This document shows positions 8,755-25,540 of a stretch of DNA of 36,162 nucleotides, piece after piece (position 1 is the first letter of the stretch; each line of letters begins with the position of its first letter). The translations under genes and the position numbers were made by a program. The stretch comes from Hyphochytrium catenoides (Eukaryota > Protista > Hyphochytriomycota): NCBI GenBank assembly GCA_900088475.1, contig FLMG01002561.1:1-36162 (forward strand). The letters are read 5' to 3'. Below the pieces are notes generated by a model. It did no database searches and had not been told where the DNA came from. It was given only the letters and a program-made list of their open reading frames with translations.

Positions 8755-10695
8755 ATGGCCTCCAAGTGGCGGCAGATGACGGTGAGGCAGCTCCAGGATG
8801 AGCTAAGGGCTCGCGGTAAGCTGTGAGCCTGCCCTTCTCTCACTTAGAGCTTAAGCTAAGAAGTGGGGTGCAGGATTGAGGACAACAGGTCGCAAAGACG
8901 AGCTTCTCCAGCGATTGCTGGCCATGACAGGCATGGACGTATCAAGCACCTCTACAAAGAGAAAGCTCGCCGATATGGGCGGAGATCAAAGGGTGGATAT
9001 CTCGTACCCCCATCTAGTGAGTAAGAAGTCCAAAGATGAGCCATCGAGAAAGATCGAAGAGCTCTTTCAAAGATATGCAGGTGGAGTGCTTTGAGACCTT
9101 TGTCGACGTCTGCTTCCTTCCTCTTTCCTATTCAACGCGCTCGCGGCTCTGTCCAAGGTTGGAAGCCGAGCACGAAGCGCGCTGATAACTGCCATTGTCA
9201 ATCAACAATATGCGGCTCCTAATATCAAGCTGTCTCCCCGCATAGACCCTGATGACCCTGACGTGATGTCTGACGATGGACTCATGGCATTTTGTGAAGA
9301 CCTTTCCGTGGACCCAGCGGTACGATCGACGAATTATCTGACAGCTAAAGTAGACAATTTGAAGGAAGGAGAGATGAAAAGGAGTAGCCTGAAGAGCACC
9401 TCCATATCAGAGTGAGGATGGACTGCTCATTTTTTGAAGGACGAGAGTAGGGAGTTCACAGACGGTAAACTTCCACTGTATGAGAGGAATGACGGTCCAG
9501 CCCAGGCGAGAACAGAGAGAGAGAGAGAGAGACGGCCCGCGGTTTGGAGACAGAGTACATTGTCCAGCATTGTAGAAACTTAGACCTCAAATGTCTCTTC
9601 TGTGCAGGATCCCGTGATGTTAGTCATAGCTTTTCACATGGGCGCCAAGAATATGAGCTCGATCAGTAAGAAGGATGTTGCCCAACTGTTTGAGAAGCTG
9701 AGGTAGGTTACACTTTCTCGGTCTTCTTCTTGGCGATCTCTGGGCCTCATCTTCTATCGCTAACATGTGCTCTTCATCCTTGGCTGCATCCCTCCTGATC
9801 CCTGTTTGTACTCTGCCGATGAGCAGGTGTGGGTCAATCAATGAACTGAGGGACAAGCTTGGATTTCTGCGTCAGGATCTTTATAACGACAAATTTCCCA
9901 AAATATACACAGTAAGGCTCAGAAGATTAACGTCGCTCAGATGTGGGATCCAGTCCAACCTAACTCTGCTGGCTTCTCTTGCTGCCGTCCCTTTCTTTTC
10001 GCTCTCAATATCATTTCCCAGTTTGCATACACTTTCTCTTTAGAAGAAGGTCAGAAGAGCTTAGCTATGGACGTGGCACTAGAGCTTTGGCCAATGCTCC
10101 TTAAGGATAAATTCTCCCTTCTGCCCCAATGGATAGAGTTTGCGAAGGTAGCAAGCTCTTTCCTTAGCAAATACGTCTTCTCACCGCAATCTTTGGTTTG
10201 GAAGAGCTATTTTGGTCGTGAGTCTCCATACTCTTTGAGTTTGACCCGCAACGCCCATCTACGTCAAGGGATGATAGTCTACTAATGTACGTTTCCTTGT
10301 CCACTAGTCTCAGAATAGGAAAGCGGTATCACGGGACACGTGGTGTCAGCTCTGGGAATTTGCTAAGCAGAATAGTTCGGACCTCTCGAAGTATGATGAG
10401 GAAGGTAAGACGGGCTGCAGTTCCCGCTCTCGGCACTTGCATCTTCGAGCTTCTTTCTACGGTGGTATTAATACCTTGTTGCGTTTGCTTGGTCTGCTAC
10501 CATCTTCTGGTCCGCGAAAATGGCTCCTCATCTCTTTAGGTGCATGGCCAGTGATGATAGATGACTTTGTCGCTTGGATGAAGGAGAAAGAGAAGAACAA
10601 GGTGATCAAGGCCCCAGCTTATCGTCGTACTGCGCACCTTCAATGCTAAAACTCCCCTTTGTTTGACATAGGAGGAAACCAAGGAGAGCTCATAA
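8755..10695 (+). CDS. DCN1-like (DCUN1D) cullin neddylation co-E3 with an N-terminal SAP domain, ~9 exons
   Basis: Exons 1-2 give MTVRQLQDELRARG|LRTTGRKDELLQRLL (SAP consensus). Downstream is the PONY/cullin-binding domain: IEELFQRY...DGLMAFCEDLSVDP...FAYTFSLEEGQKSL...VSRDTWCQLWEF...YDEEG|AWPVMIDDFV. The last micro-exon (10672-10695) is uncertain; without it the stop is at 10649. Confidence 0.9.
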
Positions 10696-13600
10696 GTTAT
10701 AGAGGAGAGTCAATTGCTTGACTCGTCTCTCTCCATNNNNNNNNNNNNNNNNNNNNNNNNNNNNNNNNNNNNNNNNNNNNNNNNNNNNNNNNNNNCTCAT
10801 GCTCTGACCACCATCGTCATACTCTTCTTTATCAGTCTCCTCCTCTTCCTCTTGCTCCTGATCTTGTTCCTCTTCGGAGGTACTTATAGAGTCCGGTCCT
10901 TCAGTTGAGTCGAGGGACCCCGTGTCCTCCTCCCCGGAGTCTGACTCTGACTCGCTGCTGTCCTTCGAGACAAGCTGCTCTCTGCAGGAAGATGGAAAAG
11001 TTGGGATGAGAAATAAAGTACTCTTCTATTAGCTTTCTACCCCTTGCTTCTCAGTAGTTTCTCTCTATGACCATCAATTCGCTGGCTCCCTATGTATAAG
11101 GGATCACGTATATGGTTGGCCCTAGATCGAAGTCTCCGTCCTTCACCCGACCTCTTCTCACTCTTATCTTTAGGTACGATTTGTGCCTCTTTCTGTCTAT
11201 TTACCCGCCTCAACCGGTTGTTTCCTCACTAAACACCCTGTCCCTTACAGTCTTACCGAAGGATGGTGAACTGCGTCTTCCTCTCCTTCCACCAGGAATT
11301 ACCTAAGAAGCTAGTCTGCAGTTTGTACTGGACTTGGATCAGTGGAGTCATCAAGCTCATATATCTCGTGTTAAGTTCCGTGAACTTGGGAGGGAAGCGG
11401 AAGAAATGTAAGGACTATGGAAGCTAGCGGACAGGTCAACTGCTAGAATGCTCCCCAAAAAGGTAGAGTCACCCAAGATAAGGATTGAGCCATGTTGGGC
11501 AAGTATTATTGAAATTGAGCTGTAAGATTGGAGGAGAGCCAGCGGTGGCGCCACATTGGGTGACGACTTCAGTGAAGCACTTACCTTTTCGAATGTCAGC
11601 TTATCGGTACCTTGGAGCTCCTTGGTGACGAGCACCATCAGGTTCTGCCCGACACCCAGCACCTTCAATAGCTCAAAGTATTGAGCAGGAGTGGCGTTGC
11701 CGTCCAGAGAACGGTCGAAGCCAGTGAAGAGGAAGTTATAGAGCTGGACGATAAAGAGGTCAGAGACAGGAATGAGGCGATTGACGGAAGAGGGAGAAGA
11801 CTTTGCAGCTTGATGCCAAGGGCAAAGTGAACCAAGAGAGTACGGAGTGAGCAGGGGGGGTTAGAACCCTCTTTACTGAACAACAGGTGTAGACGGGGCA
11901 AAAGCACTTAGACAAAGACACACACATACGATGTATCTAAAGCCGCCAAGGGACGGGAAGTCATGCCAGAGTGCTGGAAGACACAATAGGTACGCACCTC
12001 GCTGACGCCAAACATGCAGAACGTTCCAAGTGAACAGACGAACTGTCCGAAGTCAAGCTCCTTTATCTCCTCCCCGAGAGAGAAATTGAAGACTCGCACA
12101 GTGACAGAGTTCCGGGGAATCTAGTGATGGACAAAGCTTACTTCTCAGAAGGCAGGCTGTGGACAGAAAGAGACTGCTCCTGCACTCCTTCGCCTTCTCC
12201 GCTAGTTTCCTATCTTTTTTCTGCCTCTTCCCCTTCTCTGTTTCTCTCTCTCTTCCTCGTGGTTCCAGCGACGGTGAGCTGTCTCTTACCCTGGTGTACT
12301 GAAAGAACTCTGTCAAGCTTATGGTTCCGCCTCCATCGGCGTCCATATGTCTGAATAGCTGCTGGAGCCGTTCAATGTCGAGAGAGGTTAGAGCCAGGAA
12401 CTCCACAGCAGACTGTGGAAACAAGAGAAAGCGAACGGTAAGTGTGGCATAATGAGGAGCTCTCTAACACCAGAAGACGCTGTCAAATGAGGATGCATCC
12501 TGGGCATATGACGACGGTAAGCTCAACAAGGGATAGATCACGACTAATAATAGCACCATCAGTGGGCTCTGCTTTCCCTTGGCTTGCTGTCGTTCTTGGA
12601 CCTCTCTCTCCGCCTCCTCGATCTCAAATTCGGCGTCGGCCAGGGCTTCCCGAACTTTCTTGTTAGCTTCAAACCAGGAAAGACAAAACCCAAATCAGTT
12701 GAGAGCTTGTGGAAGGAGAGTAACCCATCTATGCCGTATTAAGCGCGGAGCGTAGAAGGATTAGGAGACGGGAGGGAGAAGAGGGAAGGCTGGAAGGAGT
12801 CAGGAAAGGCCCGCAAGCTATCTGCTCACCAGGATCCGCGGCAAGAATCTTTCTTAGCTCTACAATGTTCCTGGTCTGGTCCTTGATGTTGATCTTCCCT
12901 GTTGTTGTCCTTCCAGCTGACGCCTTCCGCACCCAGAGATACATCCCGGAGGCAAAGCCGAAGTGCCCTAAGTCTTCATCAATGCGCACGAAGTTTAGGC
13001 GAGCAAGTCGTGTCTTTAAAGCCCACCGCCGTTTGTCGGAGAGAGAAGAAGCCAGAGCAGAGGCACAGACAAGACACAGAGAGAGAAAGAGGGAGAGAAA
13101 AAGGAAGGAAGACCGATATTAGGCCTTATCGTGTGAAGTCTGTTGGTGGTTGCATGAAAGAGAAGAAACTCGGTCTGTCAAGATCAATGAGTTGTTTCTC
13201 TCCCTCCCTCGACACAAGATCCTTCTCACTCTCTCACTCCTACCTCCTCCTGCCTGGTATAGGATACTCTAATATCTGCCAGCATGTCGTCGTCCTTCAC
13301 TCCTCTGGCGCCTAGAACCAAAGAGGCTGCTCGCGGCTGGGCTGCTGGCCCGTTGAGCAGTGGATGGGAGAACGTCTTAAAGCCCAATGACTTTAGGTCC
13401 ACGTATCTCGGAGATAAAGGGTCAGCGTGAGAGAGACGAAGCTCTGTAAAGGGCTGTACACCTGGTGCAGCGGGAGGTGGTATATGGCAATGAAGAATGA
13501 GAGATGGGGAGAGAGAGAGAAGGCGTTAGCCTACAGAGGCCACACTCACACCAGGGATAGCAAGCTGCAAAACGCTCGAGTGAATTTCTCCTCAGAACTC

Positions 13601-16600
13601 CTATGCTTTTACTTCTTTTCCTTTCCTTCTGATCACTCTCAGCTCTCGTCTTCTTGGTGTTAACTCCTTTGTAAACTTTCATAGCTCAGATGCTCTCAGA
13701 TTCCAGGTTATTGACCCTTCTCTCTTTCCCCTACAGGCCACTTTCCCTTTCCCAGTTCTGCCTTTAATCACTCTTGGCATGCCCTCGCTCGCCTGTCTGC
13801 CTCAGCTCACCCTTCTCTGCTGACTTCTTCACCCAGATGTACACCGGCGCGTGCAGTCCCAAATCTTGAGGCAGTCTTTTGAAGCCACCTTCCTCCGTCA
13901 GGTGCAGCGGTGCCTGCGATGCCTCGAACTCCTGCAGCTCCGCCAGGCCCACAGTCAGGTGAAGATCGACAATACCCACTATCAGCAAGTCGGACCAGTG
14001 ATAGGAGACAGTGGAGAGACGTTTGTTAGTGTTTAATCACAAGGAGGGACATACCCTGAGGAGCCACAAGACATGTGCAGGGGTATGATACGGGTCAATA
14101 ATGGAGGAGGCAGACGTAAGTCTCAAAGTGCCACGAAGAAGAAGAAGCGTAGGAAGAAGGGAGACGGAGTGGTGTTCGTGGGCAGTAGGCATTAGATCTA
14201 GATGCAATCCCTGAGGGTCGAATCAGAGAACTAACAGCAAATGTAGACGGAAGAACGCTGCAAAAAGGCGGACCGCGTAACGAATGCCGAACAAGGCTAC
14301 AGCATAAGCAGTGGGAAGCATGAGACACACACGGAGCGAGAGAGAGAGAGAGACAGAAAGACTTAGAAATGGGCAGAGCTATGGCCATAAGAGGCAAGAG
14401 AACTTCTCCGTCACGTACGAGGCTTTTTCAGTGTTGTCGCCTGCCTCTCTCGAATGACAGCCCGTATCCTTTCCCTGTAGAGGAACTGCTGCTGACGCCT
14501 CGTTGAAGCTTTGAAGAGCAGTCGCTCGGAGAAAGAGAGTGTGAGGAGGTGCTTCTGGATCTTCTCTTCCTCCTTCTTCCTCAGAGTCAGTAGAAGAGAC
14601 TGTCCCATTCTCTCGTCTACCTCCAATTTCCTTGTATCATTCTTCTCTTTGACTTCCATGTCGGTCTGCTTCTTCTTTTCCTCGGCTTCAGCTCTCCTTC
14701 TGGCTTCTTCCTTGTAGGCCCGCACCTTCTCTCTGTAGATCAAAATAGGGCTTGGGTCGATTCTCTTTTCTATTGCCTTGGCGGGTTGCTTCCTCCCTCC
14801 GCTAATCTTTGGCAGCATTGATGACTTTGGTAGCGTAGGCGTAGGCTCCCAGAGCTTCTTATTCACGATATTTTGCCAGTGCTCAATGGAGAAGTGTGAA
14901 GGGAGAGAGGAGGATGAGAGCTCTACGGAAGGGAAGACGGCGTCGAAGACTAGCTGTTCATTGTAAGTTGAGCTCAGCTTTCTCTGGATAACAAACAGGT
15001 CTTTCGCTTCCAGCTCAGCCGCTACCTGGAGGTCCGAAATCTCTTCCTCGATCTCTCTCTCCCTCTCTGCAGCGAGGGAGAGCGAGGAGAACACGTGGTG
15101 TTCATGCCTGGCGGTTAAGCTCTTCGCTTCCCGCAAGGACTCCAAGTGCGTATTTTCCATGGAGAAGATGATCTTCCGGTTAACAACTTCAAGTTTCTCA
15201 TGGAGCAGCTGCAGCGAGCGCTGACCGCGGTCTCTAAGCTTCAAAAGGCTGACATTATGCGAGGAAATGTTAGGCTGGAAGGGCATGCAAGGGCCACCCA
15301 TGGAAGGAACATGACCTAGGAAAAAACAGAATAGAAAGAGGAAAAGGCTCTCCAGGATAGATTTTTTTAGAGTGTGCGCTCTCCTCTGAACCACTGCCAA
15401 TGAGCCAGGAGGAGAATGAACTGGTAAAGACCGAGTATAAGGATGGGAAGAGTGAGAGAGAAGGACAAGCAGACGGATGGCGTGCTGATAGGAGAAAGAT
15501 AGCAGTTGGTGCTCCTCGGATGTGAAGATATAGGGAGAGAGAGAGAGAGAGACAGAGAGAGAGAGACAGAGAGAGAGACAGAGACAGAGACAGAGAGCAG
15601 AGAGAGAGAGACAGAGAGAGACAGAGAGAGAGAGAGAGGAAGGACTAACACAGCGAGGGACAAAGAACTCTGAAAGCGCATCTGTAACAGTAATAGAGGA
15701 TAAGCTACAAGCCTCGAAGACGAGAAAGGGGAATGATGAGAGCGATCAAGAGACTGGAAAAGAAGAGAGCGGGCCTGACTTACCGCCGCTTGGTCACCGC
15801 CATGCTCGCCTTTACCTCTCCGTCCAGGTCAATGAGACGCTGAGCAACCTTCCTTTTTCTCTCCAGAAGCCATAGAATTTGCAGCCGCAACATCTTTAGC
15901 TGGTCATCCCGGTCTTCTGCTTCGTCGTCTTCCGCCTCCCGCTCTTGTTCCCTCTTTCGTTCCTCTCTCGCGGAACGTAGAGAGTCCTCAACCGCAGTGA
16001 GGACGGTCTTCAAGCTGGCTAGCTCTTCACAGAGCCATCGAAGGTACTGCGCTGAAGAGGCCGCATAGAGAGATGCAATTGCCCTTATCTCTCTCACTTC
16101 GCTCTCTCCACTTTCTAGCACTGCGTGAAGCTCGAGCAGACCTGCTGCTGCGAGGCTTCGCGCTGCTTTACACAGCTGCAGACGGGTTGAGCTCTTCTCG
16201 TTCCCGTCTTTGCAGAGTGGCCGGTACTGGTCTTTTTCGGCTCTTTCGCTATCCGGAGAATCTGGCTTGCCCTGTCTAGGTTGAAGAGAAGGCAGCGCTT
16301 TGTCCCCTGTCTCTTCTCCATCTTTCACTTGCTCTCCTGCGAGGAGTAGTGAGTCGCCATTCTTTGTGTCTTGTTTGGCTCCAAGAGTCATGGATTTCTC
16401 TCCAAGCTCTGGACTATCTAGTTCCTCTTGTTTGACTGCTTCTGTCCTTTCGCTCACTATTCTTCTCTTCTCTTCTTCTATGGCCTTCATTGTCCTCGGG
16501 TGACTGGCTATTCTAAAGAAGGGAAGTCTCTTCATTTCCTCCTGTAGAGCTCTGAGATGCTCATCCAGGGAAGCGAGGAAGAGGAAGGTAAAGCTGTCTA

Positions 16601-19600
16601 TCTCTTGTACCTCTCTAACCCTTTCCCTTCTGCATGCTTCACCCAGCAGCTGCCTTCTCATCCTCAAGGGAAGGACCTTCTTGTCTCTTTCTGTCTCTTC
16701 TCCCTCTTTCCATTTGGCATTACGGAGCCCTGCAATCGCAGCGCTAGTCCTTTGCCGCACCTGGTGTCCTCTGAAGACTCGTTGGATATAAATGGCAGCT
16801 GCTGCTCTACCTCCTTCTGCATCTTTCCTTCCTTCTAAGATTCCCAAAGCATGGCTGCTAGATAACCGGGGCCCTAGGAAGGCAGTGGAGGGTGATCTAC
16901 TTGAGAGAGCAGACAAAGAAAGGTTTTTAGCAAAGGGAGATGTAGGAGAAGAAGGACGAAGATTTTGACGGCCCTTGTTAGCAGAGAATACAGAGCGCCG
17001 TCTAACTTTGTCCAAATACTTCCTCATAGTCCTTTGAAGCATTAGCGCGGCTCCTACGAGCTTTCTCTGTCTCCTCTCTTCTTCTGTCAAGGATTGGCTG
17101 ACATCTGTCCCATCCAGTGCCCGCTGTAAGAGGATAGCGGAGGCATTTGCAGAGTAAGAGATTGGTCCCGCCCTTCCGGCCTCGGCGAGAGAGATCGCTT
17201 CTTTCATACTTTCTTGGAGCATCCTTGCTCTCTGTAGGGCCGATAACAGCGGAGCGCTGTTGTCTGACGCTGCTACTCTTTGAGCAGCAAGGAGAGCGTC
17301 TCTTTTGTCGCTCTCCTCCTCCTTCTTCTTGAGCGCTGCAGCGAAGGCTGACGAAGAAAGAAGAACCGAAGAAGAGGAAGTATCCTTTGGGCTAAGAATG
17401 AGAGAACGGATAAGCTCTTTCCTTCTCTTCACTTGGATCTCCGCCATCACCAGGTCATTAGTGGTGATCACTCGCTGGTCTTTGCCTCCTCCTGTCGCTC
17501 CAGACTCTGTCTTTCTCTCTCCTAGCGGAGAGGTACAGAAGGGGAATGAGTGAGAAGGTGAGAAGCAAAGCGGACAGACGTGCACGAGCACTTCTCCGTT
17601 GCTTGTCTCGTGATAGGCAGAATATCGTAGAGGACACTGCCCACCGTTCCAGGCCCGGCAGACAACGAGACCAGAGAAACCAGCTGAAGGGACAAAGAGG
17701 GAATCCGCAGCATTGTATCTACCAGGAGGCCCTGGTCTCTCTCTCTCCTGCGCTGCTGTTCTCTCTACTGCTTGTCTCTCTGAGGCTTCTCCTATCGTAA
17801 AGAGCCGTTCGTAGGCATTGTACTGAAGGGTTGGAAGTTTCCGAAAGAAAGAAAGAGAGAGAGACTCGGGAGGCGTTTGAAGGACATCTAACACCGCCAG
17901 CGTCTCTTCACTCTCAGCATCGCCGTCTTCTAGAGACATCTCTCTCTGTCTTTCTCTGAGCTCTTTTCTGCCTTCATCATACGCCTTGGAAAGAGCCGAA
18001 AGAGGAACTTTGTCTCCTACTGCGAATTGCATGACAACGAGTCTGCCCATATAAAGGCGGAGCCTTTCTAGCTGTGCGGGACCGAGGTAACCGCCTCCCT
18101 CTTTCTCTTGTTCTGTTCTTCTCTTTCTCCGTCTCCGTCTCTTCAAAAGTCTCGCAGATGGAGGTTGTCTCTTGGCTGGTCCTAGAGTTTGGATCAAGGT
18201 GTCTTTCAGTCCTTTGATGCTCTCTTTCAACTCTGAGAATTCTTCTCTGAAGACTGCATCGTCCTGTAGCTCTACTATGGCCCGACGCCTTCCCACGGTG
18301 ATCTCTTCTGTCGTCTCCTCTCCAACTTCCGGGCGAGAAGACTGAAGATGTGATTGGAGATACTCCTTCGCGTCTTCGTCGTCTTCACTCTCTTCTCCAT
18401 AACGTTCTTCCTCTACCGGCCAAATGTCTTTAACAAAGAAGAAGATGCCCAAGAAAAGGATCACACTCTTAAGCTTCGCTCTTAGTATCCTGATCCGCCT
18501 CTCTTTCGCCAGCCGTGCAGCAGCAGTGTTTCTATCGATCTGTTCCCTCTTTCGTAGGACACCTAAGACCCTCAAGTGGTGCTGAAGGCGCCGAACGACT
18601 GAGGAGAGAAAGATACTGTTCAAATGGAAGGATTCCCTCTCCGCCAGAGCTTCGTGCTCCGCAAAAGTGAAGCCCCATTCTATCACTCCAGGACGGGAAG
18701 ACAGAGGCGAAGGTTGCAGCAGAGGCTGAGGAAGAGACGATGAGAAGAGAGGGCGTACATAGAGAACTCTTTTCTCTTCGATGAGGGCATTGACTAACCT
18801 CTGCCGTTCCTCAGCTTGCTCTAGATCGCCTTTCTCCCTTATTTTCAGCGCCCTAAGAGCTGGAGTGATAGAGAGTAGAGGAGATAGCGCCGAAGGGAGA
18901 GAAAGAGTGCCACAGCAGACGATTTGAAGCTCTTTCAGCCTAGGCAAACATCCTCGAACCTTCATCTCCTCAATGCGAAGGAAAGGGAAGTGGGCGAGGT
19001 GAAGCAGCTCAAGAGAAAGAGAAAGGCCGTGGCCGAAGAGTAGCGTTCCAAGACTGGAGGCCGAGAGAGTCACTTCATCCTTCTTCCTAGGCAAAGTCCA
19101 GGAGGCCGCAGAGATAAGGCGCAGTTCTCTTAGACCTTGACACCAGGAAAGCATGCAGGGAGATGCCTCCTGGAAGAGAGGGTACTGGAGAGAGCGGACC
19201 CCATGAAGAGCGAGGACTTGAAGGCAGGAGTAGCGGGCTAGAGCGTGGACCGACTGCTCGCTAATGAAGCTCTCCTCCCCCTCCAGCCTCACGACTCTAA
19301 GCTGGTCTATAGCGGCAAAGTGTAAGAAGAGAGCTCTGGAAGTGTTGCGTGATCCACGGAGCCGACAAGAGAGAAAGATATCAGAGAGAATGGAAGCGGA
19401 CAGTGAGAGAGGAAGAAATGGGGACAGAGAGCTGGGAGAGACAAGCACCTAGAGGATAACAAGAAAAAAAAAAGAGGAAGAGGAGGACATAGAGGAGCCC
19501 AGGAAGTGTCTCCTCCTTGTGCAGTATCTTACTTACCGGCAGCGTACTGCAGGAGCCAGAAGAGGAACTCATCATTTGCTCTATTTACCCCTACCCAGAT

Positions 19601-20115
19601 ATCTAGAAGTGACCCTCCGGCCATCGGTTCAGGGCCGTCCGTATTGTTCTCCTTCTGGGGAGTGCCGTGAACCACAAGCTGCTGAGCGTTGACCTGAGGG
19701 AAATCCAGGAGACAGAGGGAATGGAGCTGAGGGAGGAAGGAGCTTAACAGAACGGAGAGCCCTAAGTGGGAGACTTTTTCTAGGCGAGAGAGGGACAAAT
19801 GAATGATATGAGGAGCACCCAGCGTGAGCATTCGAAGCCCGTCATCCGTCAGCTGATCTAAGCTTGACAAGGAGAGAGTGTGGAGAGAGATGGCGCTCGG
19901 GATCGCTCCCCTCATCAATGCTCGTGACAAAGAAAAATCGTCAAACCCTGGCTCAGAGCCCTTCAAAACCAGCGCATGTAACTGGGGACAACTGCGCAAT
20001 ATCCTAGCCCAGGGCACGAGCATAAAGGAGATGAGGGAGTGGAAGAGAGATGGTCAAGAATGAACCACAGAGGTAGTGAAGGGGCAACAAGGAAGAAGAG
20101 AGGAAAACAACGTGG

Positions 20116-20146
<31 letters not shown>

Positions 20147-21343
20147 AGGAGATAGTATGAGCAGATCGGGAAACGAGAAATTGATGGATAGAAGCATCAG
20201 ACGAAGGAGCACGGCTAAGCCTAGGTACCAGGTTAGGGATTGAGGGCTGAGGAAGCGACAGTCTGAGACGTCGACTCTCCTCAAAGTAGTGAACCTCTCA
20301 GAGTCATTGCTTGAGGAATGAGCGGGAGGGCTTGAGCTTCTTTTGTAGGGGCTTTTATCTCCCTCGACTGGTGCCCCTCCGTCATAATCCCTCGCCTGTT
20401 GAGATGAACAAACAGAGAAAGGCTCTCCCGTGATGCTAGTGCCGGAGAGGAGCATAACAGTGAGCTTCCTGCAGTGATGCAACACCGCCTGGAGGCCTGG
20501 GTCACAGAATCCGAGGCAGCCCGACACGTCCAAGTATTGAAGGTCCTGCAATCGCTCGCTGGAGGAGATGATCGTGGCATCGTCAAGGAGAGAAAGTCCA
20601 GTCATTCTCAAGGTCTGCAGACGGGTCAACGCTCCGAGGGTATCAGCCAGACTCTTTTCCTCCTCTTCTCTCGGGACACGGTTACGTGAGGACGTACCCG
20701 TTTCCTCTTCTCTCCTTTCTTGGAAGGAACAGTAGCTAATGTCAAGAGAAAGAAGAGTGTTGCCGGCTCTTCTTATCGTTGCCAGGCCAGCGAGTGAAAG
20801 AGAGGAGCAGTATGAGAGATCTAAAGAGGCCAGCTGTCTGCAGTTCATAAGAATGCTCTCCAGTACTCCGTCAGTGATATCCGCATTGCCTCTGCAGCTG
20901 ACAGTAAGGAACAGATTGTCATATCGTTGCAGAGCGCCTTGTAAACTCGTGGTTGTCAGTCTCCAGGGCGCAAGGCTCAGCGTAAACTTTTTCCCATTTT
21001 CGTCTTTAGCTGTCTTCGTGGCATCATCCATCCCTTGCTCAGTGCCAATCTTATACCAAGTCTCACCTTCAATGGTCGATGCGGTCTGCAGCTCAAGTTG
21101 GTGAGAAAGCAGAAAAGGGCCAAGGTCACACTGCCTGCTTTGCTGTGACTGAAAGTAGGAGGCATGCCAATGGTTCGCTGTGGGGAAAAATTCGGTGGCT
21201 GGGTCCTTAAAGAGGCGAAGCGCTGTGGCGCGGGCTGTTGAGCTGGAGGCCTCTTGCAGCTTCTTCGCAGCCCCAAATCCCAGATCTACAGCCCGCCTAC
21301 CTACGGGAGGACCATCTCCTGCCAAAGACGGCCCCAGCTCCAT
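10690..21343 (-). CDS. Giant (~2,500 aa, ~14 exons) multidomain protein: F-box/AMN1-type LRRs, Zn knuckle, IQ motifs, coiled coil, MABP-like repeats, EF-hand module, acidic tail
   Basis: LRRs: LASLDLSYCSSLS, LQYLDVSGCLGFCD, LRRVDVSDCRFLS, LSLSSLDQLTDDGL. IQ motifs: LQRTMRKYL, IQRVFRGHQVR. The apparent stops at 15780 and 14411 lie inside donors (CG|gtaagt, C|gtacgt), and phase-compatible acceptors continue to GIVDLHLTVG..., ADIRVSYTRQEE|TRL...YLWVRK and DADGGGTISLTEF. The 3' end runs into the N-gap at 10737-10795, so the stop is approximate. Individual exons are more secure than the single-gene model. Confidence 0.68.
10737..10795. other. Assembly gap (59 N) in the last exon of the giant gene
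   Basis: Run of N. Confidence 0.99.
15535..15640. repeat. (AG)n/(AGAC) microsatellite inside an intron of the giant gene
   Basis: gagagagaga gacagagaga... over about 105 nt. Confidence 0.9.
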
Positions 21344-21637: not shown

Positions 21638-21707
21638 NNNNNNNNNNNNNNNNNNNNNNNNNNNNNNNNNNNNNNNNNNNNNNNNNNNNNNNNNNNNNNN
21701 NNNNNNN
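21638..21707. other. Assembly gap (70 N) abutting an (AG)n run in a divergent intergenic region
   Basis: Run of N followed by agagagagag. Confidence 0.99.
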
Positions 21708-22148: not shown

Positions 22149-25100
22149 ATGCTTGCTACCGCCGCTGCTGACAGCAATGTGGAAGACAGAGCAGACTGTA
22201 AGACGAACGAGAGCAGCCGCTGCTGACCAGTAGAGTCCGTGAGCACTGCAGCCCTAACCAAACGGGTATACTAGCTGGCTCCGCGCCGCCTATGGAGGAA
22301 AACGGCAATTCACTTCTCGAGGAACCCGCAGACAGTGCTCAGCAAGCCTTCGGGGAGAACGGCGTCTCATTTTACCAGTATGGTATGGCGCTCGTTATGC
22401 GTTGCTGTCGTGGATTTTTGCTAAAAAGCACCTCCATGCAGATCACTCGGAGCTCATAAGCAGCCTTTACACTTCTACGGAGCGTGAACTTATTGACAAG
22501 TTAGTCTATAGTGAGCAGAATCTTAGAATTAGGCCGACGGGAATCAGCGGAGGCCGGCACTATGAGGACTTCTTCGACTTCACAGAAGACAAAGTGGTTC
22601 GAGCAGGTATACGTGCGCAAAATTTGTGGCGTCCTGGTCCCTCTTCTGCTTGCGCTATCCGGCTTACTTTGCGAGGTTGCATCGGTAGGCTGGGCAGAGA
22701 ATCGGCATTGGCCCGTTCAATGGAGCGGTGGCACAATCCACTCAGGACTGCCAGACGCGATGTTCGATGGCAGTGCAACCACCCAATGGAACCCAGTTGG
22801 AGCGCGGCCTAACCAAGAGCATGTAAGTAAACTCAGCGCCCAATTGGGCCGCCCTATTACGAGGGTACTTTAGGTGCGAACAACAGATGCTCATGTCAGG
22901 GAAAAAGCTATGAGGATGAGAGCTAGTATTACGGTTAGGTGGAAAAGCAATAGATTCGGCGAAAGAGAAGAGGGGCTTCTTTCTGAAAAGAAGGAAGAGA
23001 GACGGTAAGGAGAGAGAGAGAAGGGGTGGGAGATAGAAAGAGAGGCAGAGAGAGCGAACGAGAGAAAGTGAAGGAGAGCCAGAGACCGATGAGAGTTGGA
23101 GAAAGCTGTACACAGGGGCGGAAGGTCTAACCTCTGCCATCTGTCCCTTAGTGGGTTGTCTTGTGCTTCGGCGGTCCAAAGACTATCCACGGCTTCCGGC
23201 TGCGCTCTAACCCTAGCAAGAAGCACACCGTGATGCACTTCCGTTTAGAGGTAGGCGACACGGAGGACGGCCCATGGTCGGTGATAGGCTTCTTCGAGCA
23301 CCGAAACAAGGATCCAGTCTTAGGCGACTANNNNNNNNNNNNNNNNNNNNNNNNNNNAGCAGCTCAACCTCAGCGGTCGGCACTTCAGCCCCACGTCAAG
23401 CAAGAACATCGTGAAGCTGTTCCCTTCATTCACTGATAAAAAGGCAAAAGAGAGGAGTTCCCCTATCCCTCTCCAAGTGACAGTGCTACGGAGTTCTCCC
23501 ACGGAGCTGCTTCTATCCATAGAAGGGCTGTGTGAAGATCATCTAGGACCACTGAACGCCATGGTTGAGTCGGACGACATCATTGGCATGGACGAACCCG
23601 TTGTGATAGCCGTCGTAGTGGAAGGTGCGGCTCTTGATCTACCGCTTAGAAGGTGTCCAGTGTTCGCTATCTATCTTTCTTTCTTGCATCATTGACCTTG
23701 TTCAGGCCTCCCTCGAACCAGTTCTTTAGTTCTGTCAATACGCTCATCGGTTCTTCTTGTTCCATTATGCGTGGGGTGCAGAGGTGAAGCCCAATGCACA
23801 CGCTTTCATCGAAGGAAAGAAGGCCGCGGGAGGAGTAGATGCAGTTGTCCGCGCCATGCGGATGCACTCCCAGGACCAGGGAGTGCAGTTATGGGGCTGC
23901 CACTACCTAAGGGGTGTCACCTATCGAAGTAAGCCTTTAGGAGGTCTGGGTAAAGCCAGAGGTACCCCGCAGTGCCTACCTGCTTTCTAATTGCCTATTT
24001 ATGAACGTACGCTAGATCGTGAAGACAGGGCCCTTCAGGAGCTATTGGCCTTCCTTGGGCATATGGAGAATCTTCTTACGGACAACAAGTATGGGATTCA
24101 GATCAAGACCGCAGCTTGTGAGGCCATGACCAACATGATGCAAAATGGCAAGTGATAGCGTCCTGAACGCTAGAGCAGTCCTGGTGGCGAGCAAAGTGAG
24201 GGTGATGTAGGTGAAGGGCTGAAGAAGGGCGTGTACACAGAGGGTGGCAGGACGAATACTGGAGAGGTAAACGTAAAAGAGAGACGTCAGAGAAGAAGGG
24301 AACGGAACCACCGAGGCTTACCAGCTAGAGCTTTCACTGACTTGAGAGACGGTAGCACTAGAGAGCTAACAAGAGAGAGTTGAGCACCTCAGAGGCTTAT
24401 TGGGTCGCACTTCTCTTAGATCAACTCCAGCGTCTTATGCTGACCCGAATTGGGAACTGGCTCGAAGCCTGTCTGAAGCTTGTGGAGCGGCATGCTGATG
24501 ATGCCAGGCGAAGAAAAGAATCGCTCCTTAAGAAGGGCCAGACTGGCTCTCAGGGCGAACTAGAGCTCTCAGGAGGAATGAAGATGGTCTTAGCTGGCCT
24601 CAACCTTCTCAACGCGGTTTGCGCGCATGGTAAGGCATGCTGACACATAAAGCCCGGTCATTTAGTGTCTAAAGCAATCTCTTCGAAAAGAAAAAACTGT
24701 GGGCGGCGTCGGCTCTGTCTACGGGCTCAGAGTCTTGACCAAGATCATCCAAACCTTTGATGAGGAGCCGCTGGTGGCTAAGGCAGGTTGCGAAGTGCTC
24801 CATAACTGTCTGGTCTACAACGGTCAGTGGCCATCAGAAGCCTTTCTTCGGGTCTCTCTTCCTGTCTTCTGCTACTGAAGAGATGCAAAATACCCCTGGG
24901 ACGCTTCCGCGACCTTCTCGAGATAGTATATGTACCTGACACTGTCATGATCACTCCTGCTCAATAGCCCATGCCCATGCCAATGCCCTGAAGCTCGACA
25001 TGAATAGTTTGGTCAAGGTAATTCTCGAGCGCTTTCAAGACTCAGACGACGTGCTATGTTGGGCGCAGCGTGCCACTCTTGCCCTCCAGCCTGATGGGTG

Positions 25101-25164
25101 GCGCGCTCAGCACCTGGACCGTCCGGTAGGTAGCGCAGTGAAGCCTAGCTCAGTACCTCATTAA
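22149..25164 (+). CDS. Hypothetical protein with F5/8-type C (discoidin/DOC-like) domain, IPT/TIG-like domain and armadillo-like repeats, ~10 exons, spans an N-gap
   Basis: Discoidin-like: AMFDGSATTQWNP...|WVVLCFGGPKTIHGFRL...FRLEVGDTEDGPWSVI. IPT/TIG-like: QLNLSGRHFSPTSSKNIVKLF...VTVLRSSPTELLLSI. ARM-like: GGVDAVVRAMRMHSQDQGVQLWGC, IKTAACEAMTNM, LVAKAGCEVLHN. Stop TAA at 25162-25164. Confidence 0.75.
23331..23357. other. Assembly gap (27 N) within the discoidin/IPT/ARM gene
   Basis: Run of N. The protein-like frames on either side do not match a 27-nt gap, so the true size differs or the gap hides an intron. Confidence 0.97.
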
Positions 25165-25540
25165 GTTCCATTATGTGATGCTTATAAAACATAGTTAATG
25201 TAGACATCTGCACCCTCGGCACAAAAAGACAAGCCACGCCTGTTCTGTCTCGCGACCGGAAACAGCTGTCTTTTATCTATCTCGTTAACCGATCCAACGT
25301 TATGCCGAAGCCCCCTTACTTTGCACGTCTTGATGATTCGATGGCAGCTCTTCCTCAAACAAGATCCTGGAAAGCCACTCCCTCCTGAAGAGCTGCGACA
25401 GGAAACGGGGAAGAAGTAACGATGCTAGTGATACCTGTGGTGGCACGATTGCCGGCACGGCTAGTAAAGTTTTGATAGAGGAACCCCTCAGTTGGTTCCA
25501 CGTTGAGAGGGTGACAGGCGGGAGACTACAGGTAGAGCTA

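Follow-up and report, generated by a model that had tools for sequence, protein, structure and literature searches.

A putative 13-exon gene of Hyphochytrium catenoides that would combine F-box-less FBXL-type leucine-rich repeats, an IQ motif, a beta-rich repeat and an EF-hand

We analysed a stretch of 36,162 nucleotides (nt) from Hyphochytrium catenoides (Hyphochytriomycota; GenBank assembly GCA_900088475.1, contig FLMG01002561.1, positions 1 to 36,162 of the forward strand), hereafter the window, and examined a series of minus-strand exons that occupies its middle part. From the sequence, we consider it somewhat better than an even bet that these exons form one gene of 13 exons, running from 21343 to about 10700 and encoding a predicted protein of about 2,450-2,490 residues. 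Such a protein would begin with leucine-rich repeats (LRRs) of the FBXL type and continue through an IQ motif, a long linker, a beta-rich repeat and an EF-hand to an acidic tail. A first-pass annotation, made from the letters of the sequence, had proposed that about ten minus-strand open reading frames (ORFs) are spliced here into a single frame. A stop-free chain of 13 exons with GT..AG introns bears this out, although the continuity between exons 3 and 5 is plausible rather than proven. The exons are listed below; their numbering follows the first-pass annotation, in which slot E4 was taken by a disputed micro-exon, so that the chain has no E4. A slash marks the boundary between exon and intron.

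E1, 21343-20229, minus strand: opens with an ATG (21343-21341); some 140 residues in which no domain was recognised precede cysteine-containing FBXL-type LRRs; donor TG/GTACCT.
E2, 20003-19537, minus strand: further FBXL-type LRRs; best codon score in the predicted frame.
E3, 19333-15784, minus strand: 3550 nt; the final LRRs, then a long region rich in L, R, E, A and S; donor CG/GTAAGT, which holds the TAA of the ORF.
E5, 15248-14419, minus strand: charged linker; donor C/GTACGT; candidates for the 5' boundary at 15248, 15274, 15315 and 15383.
E6, 13978-13811, minus strand: first copy of the beta-rich repeat, GF.R...DLG....YIWVKK; no ATG.
E7, 13461-13244, minus strand: central piece of the beta-rich module; a second copy by eye only.
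E8, 13013-12830, minus strand: third copy of the beta-rich repeat, NF.RI.EDLG....YLWVRK.
E9, 12666-12557, minus strand: short charged linker.
E10, 12412-12290, minus strand: EF-hand, with a near-canonical 12-residue loop at 12343-12308.
E11, 12120-11998, minus strand: probable EF-hand partner with a degenerate loop.
E12, 11743-11585, minus strand: EF-hand-like, with a non-canonical loop.
E13, 11384-11257, minus strand: helical segment beyond the EF-hand region.
E14, 10981-10796, minus strand: acidic tail rich in Ser, Glu and Asp, open into an assembly gap.

Rebuilt by hand and checked with scripts, the chain contains no in-frame stop between 21343 and the run of N at 10795, and up to that gap it totals 7361 nt, or 2453 codons. 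All 12 introns are of the GT..AG type, their phases are consistent and their lengths range from 144 to 535 nt. The H. catenoides genome paper, which mentions MAKER gene models and a 454 transcriptome, puts the average intron at 208 nt, the average exon at 228 nt and the number of introns in a gene at 3.64, and the intron range found here is compatible with that published mean. Two ORF ends lie at donor sites, and on both of them direct reading and the scripts agree with what had been claimed. The 1222-residue ORF (19448-15780) closes with a TAA (15782-15780) that sits within CG/GTAAGT, its donor GT being 15783-15782, and the TGA of the 329-residue ORF (14413-14411) lies two codons past C/GTACGT (14419/14418; donor GT 14418-14417). 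This second donor, at 14418, splices in phase to an acceptor reading gatag/TG (AG at 13980-13979), and exon 6 begins at 13978. Beyond it, phase-consistent GT..AG exons do continue to the EF-hands, as had been proposed, and reach 10981-10796. Exon 6 lacks an ATG, therefore the C-terminal module must be spliced to an upstream exon; moreover, the repeat module of exons 6-8 would be truncated without exon 5. Towards the other end of the chain, the LRR pattern is unbroken over the junction of exons 1 and 2.

GT and AG are common dinucleotides, which makes agreement of phase by itself weak evidence, and the chain was also scored for coding potential. A codon table was trained on exons 1 and 3, and the remaining exons were scored in all three frames. 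All 11 exons outside the training set score highest in the predicted frame, for which the chance expectation is about (1/3)^11, and the introns mostly give codon scores near zero or negative in every frame. On the sense strand, the content of cytosine plus thymine (C+T) is 62-75% in eight of the 12 introns, 57% in intron 7 and 34-41% in the purine-rich introns 6, 10 and 13; in the tested exons it is 33-57%. Intron 10 (12289-12121, minus strand), in addition to being purine-rich, has one stop-free frame and a coding-like codon score, and a longer alternative exon is possible there.

The choice between one gene and two is made at the link between exons 3 and 5, where the spacer (15783-15249, minus strand) has a C+T content of 72%, like the C+T-rich introns. 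The reading we prefer, as the simplest that the sequence allows, is a single intron of 535 nt (15783-15249) with no micro-exon. The stop of exon 3 lies inside a perfect GGTAAGT donor, and from 15784 (GTAAGT, two bases carried) the reading frame is taken up in phase at the acceptor 15248, which makes this one phase-2 intron. The first-pass annotation had instead restored the frame through a 32-nt micro-exon (15681-15650) and started exon 5 at 15315. The arithmetic of that model is correct, and the micro-exon has both an AG acceptor (ttacag) and a GT donor (GTTAGT), but the model calls for a rare micro-exon and two introns, whereas a single intron is enough. Moreover, the micro-exon is 69% C+T and scores as non-coding, the predicted frame not being its top-scoring one, whilst the segment 15315-15249 also scores as non-coding (-0.38 per codon in frame) and resembles a polypyrimidine tract ending in CAG. 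We consider that exact model very improbable. A mini-exon near 15393-15316, which has a locally good codon score, was rejected as well: it has no convincing donor and its score is confounded by purine richness. The spacer also contains a long CT/CTGT microsatellite (15540-15660), and similar tracts are present in introns 1, 5 and 7 and upstream of the gene.

Several observations weigh against a single gene. The donor at 15784 can also be joined in phase to an acceptor at 15383, and a donor at 15816 (GTAAAG, phase 0) to one at 15274; there are at least four phase-compatible paths from exon 3 to exon 5, thus one in-phase path is no evidence by itself. The preferred intron of 535 nt would be the longest of the gene, and the in-frame ATGs at 15291 and near 15159 are potential starts of a separate gene. 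Intron 10 scores well alongside the exons, that is, purine richness confounds the codon score, and CT tracts are found ahead of the first ATG too, thus they are not unique marks of introns. The alternative to which several of these points lead is a pair of adjacent genes on the same strand. One would comprise exons 1-3, with the LRRs and the IQ motif, in about 1,710 residues ending at the TAA 15782-15780; the other would run from exon 5 onward, start at ATG 15291 or near 15159 and carry a coiled coil, the beta-rich repeats and the EF-hand in about 750-790 residues. The 1222-residue ORF does end in a real stop codon, the 329-residue ORF does hold in-frame ATGs, the multiple alternative paths make phase compatibility cheap, and proteins with MABP and EF-hands but without LRRs are described in the stramenopile Phytophthora (PITG_06630). 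However, a stop embedded in a perfect GTAAGT donor is, by our estimate, about ten times likelier if an intron begins there than if the gene truly ends, and two genes would have to fit a 3' untranslated region (UTR), a promoter and a 5' UTR into about 490 nt, whereas the published gene count implies a mean spacing well above 1 kb. The sequence around ATG 15291 has a non-coding score and a C+T content of 64-69%, and the good coding signal at 15250-15160 comes without an ATG of its own. Taken together, we regard two genes as possible but doubtful, and with moderate confidence read the link between exons 3 and 5 as lying within a single gene.

Domain and homologue searches were run exon by exon, and genome-wide searches covered the 61-Mb assembly (4759 records). 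These searches show that the predicted N-terminal solenoid is made of LRRs of the FBXL/Skp2/RAD7 type, with no F-box detected. Exon 1 matches Pfam LRR_1 at 23.9 bits, above the cut-off, and in phmmer searches of the PDB it matches FBXL2 (6.8e-9) and also COI1, SKP2 and TIR1; exon 2 matches RAD7 (5.6e-8), FBXL5, FBXL17 and FBXL2. The neighbours of exon 1 in the ESM Atlas are FBXL-type clusters (0.92-0.94). With FBXL2 and RAD7 among the PDB matches and FBXL clusters in the Atlas, the earlier assignment of these LRRs to the F-box/FBXL type is upheld, although the F-box itself was not found: a Pfam search of exon 1 that admitted E values up to 1 gave neither F-box nor F-box-like, and no family matched the first ~140 residues. 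In the absence of a detected F-box, nothing ties the predicted protein to SCF (Skp1-cullin-F-box) ligases. What it has in common with FBXL2, Skp2, FBXL5/17 and yeast RAD7 is cysteine-containing LRRs of about 26 residues; it differs from the FBXL proteins in being 4-6 times longer and in having IQ, beta-repeat and EF-hand parts that are absent from them. LRR-plus-IQ scaffolds (CEP97, LRRIQ) resemble it in another way, in that their LRRs precede a calmodulin-binding IQ motif and the protein is long and mostly helical. However, the LRRs of CEP97 and LRRIQ are of the SDS22 type, these scaffolds have no EF-hand or beta-repeat module, and no sequence relationship between them and the predicted protein surfaced in the exon-by-exon searches.

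Downstream of the LRRs, exon 3 contains one strict match to the IQ consensus (IQxxxRGxxxR at 16787-16755, minus strand; regular expression [FILV]Qxxx[RK]Gxxx[RK]). Pfam IQ (PF00612) scores this site at 18.3 bits (E 0.0019), under the cut-off of 20.3. Two further sites, 17007-17039 (LQxxxRKxxxK) and 17406-17438 (minus strand), are IQ-like by a relaxed regular expression, and the former has no Pfam match. IQ motifs in the plural had been proposed; one strict consensus match stands, whereas the others come from the relaxed expression and the Pfam score stays below threshold. For exon 3 as a whole (1182 residues) no relatives were found by word search, by a HMMER search of 1.84 billion representatives or by a metagenome locus scan, and the metagenome scan with exon 1 also gave no match. 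The middle region of exon 3, in which L, R, E, A and S abound, has the look of a linker that is lineage-specific and evolves fast, and this part is probably helical or disordered. The charged linker of exon 5, for which no Pfam family matched, is probably a coiled coil. Also inside exon 3, the segment 17522-17671 (minus strand) is Cys-rich (C-x7-C ... C-x2-C), has a low codon score and lies between a GT and a pyrimidine-rich AG. It is possibly an in-frame GT..AG intron (150 nt, or 159 nt from another donor, starting at 17680) or a small zinc-binding insert.

Exons 6-8 appear to encode a beta-rich repeat in three parts, possibly an MABP domain. Exons 6 and 8 match each other by BLASTP (E 3e-5) and exon 7 gave no BLASTP match to either. 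By eye, all three pieces contain a strand, a G/N-F, a DLG-like element and Y-x-W-V-K/R-K. No paralogue of exons 6 and 8 was found elsewhere in the genome, and a weak genomic match of exon 7 (locus L002) was rejected as spurious, as that locus encodes Rossmann-type ORFs. With regard to MABP, the profile PF10240 searched over the whole genome has no match at this locus, phmmer searches of the PDB with exons 7 and 8 were empty at E up to 10, the ESM Atlas was empty for exon 7, and single exons gave no MABP match in Pfam, all with a domain that would be split over three short exons. PF10240 also misses MABPs other than those of MVB12 (de Souza and Aravind). The same authors describe the MABP prism as three-fold, with a PxGY signature on the second strand and a conserved Cys in subdomains 1 and 3. 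At the place of PxGY, exons 6-8 read GF, GF and NF, with no Pro; the Cys that most eukaryotic MABPs possess is missing from exons 6 and 8. As profile, PDB and Atlas matches are all absent, and so are the Pro of the signature and the conserved Cys, we do not give the MABP label. The MABP-like beta-prism claimed at first is thereby reduced to an internal repeat of two copies and a likeness by eye. That likeness to MABP proteins (MVB12A/B, DENND4/Crag) consists of strand-like motifs that recur over a module of about 180 residues, in which G/N-F stands in place of PxGY. In Phytophthora, PITG_06630 has an MABP fused to 8 EF-hands (de Souza and Aravind). The beta-rich module likewise adjoins the EF-hand region here, and an MABP pairing of this kind would not be new for stramenopiles.

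With respect to the EF-hand region, one Ca2+ site is credible on the matches obtained, which do not extend to a full module of four sites. Exon 10 reaches 24.5 bits with Pfam EF-hand_1, against a cut-off of 25.4 (E 1.6e-5), and matches calmodulins in the PDB at 4e-13 to 1e-10; its loop (12343-12308) fits the regular expression for the loop, with Gly at position 5. Exons 11 and 12 fit the relaxed loop expression only. There is no Pfam match for exon 11, and exon 12 has only weak matches, to CML18 in the PDB (E 0.71) and to EFCAB10_C in Pfam (E 0.13). A C-terminal EF-hand module had been part of the first reading, and of it the loop of exon 10 holds, whereas the further loops are degenerate. Exon 10 aligns well with EF-hand proteins of the calmodulin type, from which the predicted protein differs in that the domain sits in a giant polypeptide and its neighbouring loops are degenerate.

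The two ends of the gene and its neighbours were also considered. An assembly gap of 59 N (10737-10795) falls within the last exon. Past the gap, a stop occurs in each frame within 8-14 codons (10712-10710, 10699-10697 and 10692-10690, minus strand), therefore, with the flanks taken as continuous and in whatever frame, the gap would touch only the last ~10-35 residues of the acidic tail. The gene had been ended at 10690, and a stop is indeed present there, but that end presupposes a gap of exactly 59 nt. The start codon is preceded, at a distance of about 300 nt, by a second gap (21643-21706), flanked by (CT)n, which falls in the divergent intergenic region and leaves the coding sequence untouched. 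Downstream is a convergent plus-strand gene (9941-10649) that is DCN1-like (Pfam Cullin_binding, 2.4e-8). It seems to stop about 40-60 nt short of the candidate stop codons of the large gene, and the 3' UTRs must overlap or be very short. Upstream, a divergent multi-exon gene on the plus strand (ORFs 22292-25200) is separated by an intergenic region of about 950 nt, and the two of its ORFs that were tested have no Pfam match. An additional 5' exon upstream of 21343 is unlikely given the start of this divergent gene about 950 nt away. The interval of 10.6 kb between the flanking plus-strand genes holds solely the minus-strand exons described here. Elsewhere, a Pfam search shows that the genome carries three type-I rhodopsin loci (C2531:7223-8107, C2531:15707-16882 and C3799:6417-7183). 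Two of them share a contig, in agreement with the H. catenoides genome paper, which lists three such genes, two of them numbered consecutively.

Lastly, we considered what such a protein might do. It would be a cytosolic scaffold in which the F-box-less FBXL-type LRR arc binds a protein partner, the IQ helix may carry calmodulin or a calmodulin-like light chain, and the C-terminal beta-rich repeat and EF-hand would form a separate end, possibly Ca2+-sensitive and possibly membrane-facing. We infer this function from the types of domain only, which counts against it. The first-pass annotation had gone further and pictured a self-contained, Ca2+-switched membrane scaffold whose C-terminal EF-hands grip its own IQ helices in cis. 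The same predicted polypeptide does contain both an IQ motif and an EF-hand, and the MABP domains of MVB12 are thought, from structural work on MVB12B, to contact membranes. However, a single loop is near-canonical and the others are degenerate, the MABP identity is unproven, the IQ motif and the EF-hand are about 900 residues apart, and the usual ligand of an IQ motif is free calmodulin. The single good Ca2+ loop and the spacing of ~900 residues do not favour such a clamp over ordinary calmodulin binding, and we think the clamp very unlikely. According to one report (PMC3646851), the LRRs of FBXL2 compete with calmodulin for docking on IQ motifs, thus a contact between LRRs and IQ motif in cis is at least as conceivable as the clamp. 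A broader version would have either the LRR arc or the EF-hand module bind the internal IQ motif in cis until Ca2+/calmodulin displaces it, switching a membrane-facing beta-prism end on or off; we think this too very unlikely.

In summary, we describe a predicted gene from a little-studied lineage that is sister to the oomycetes. It would also illustrate how annotation can overlook or split long, intron-rich genes whose middle part is an orphan. No long-standing question is opened by this one; its value would lie mainly in a curated gene model and in a candidate Ca2+/calmodulin-linked scaffold for the cell biology of hyphochytrids and oomycetes. If the single gene is correct, F-box-less FBXL-type LRRs, an IQ motif, a beta-repeat module and an EF-hand would be brought together in an arrangement that has not been described. 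Moreover, were the autoregulation in cis also true, the protein would represent an undescribed architecture of autoregulated scaffold in the stramenopiles.

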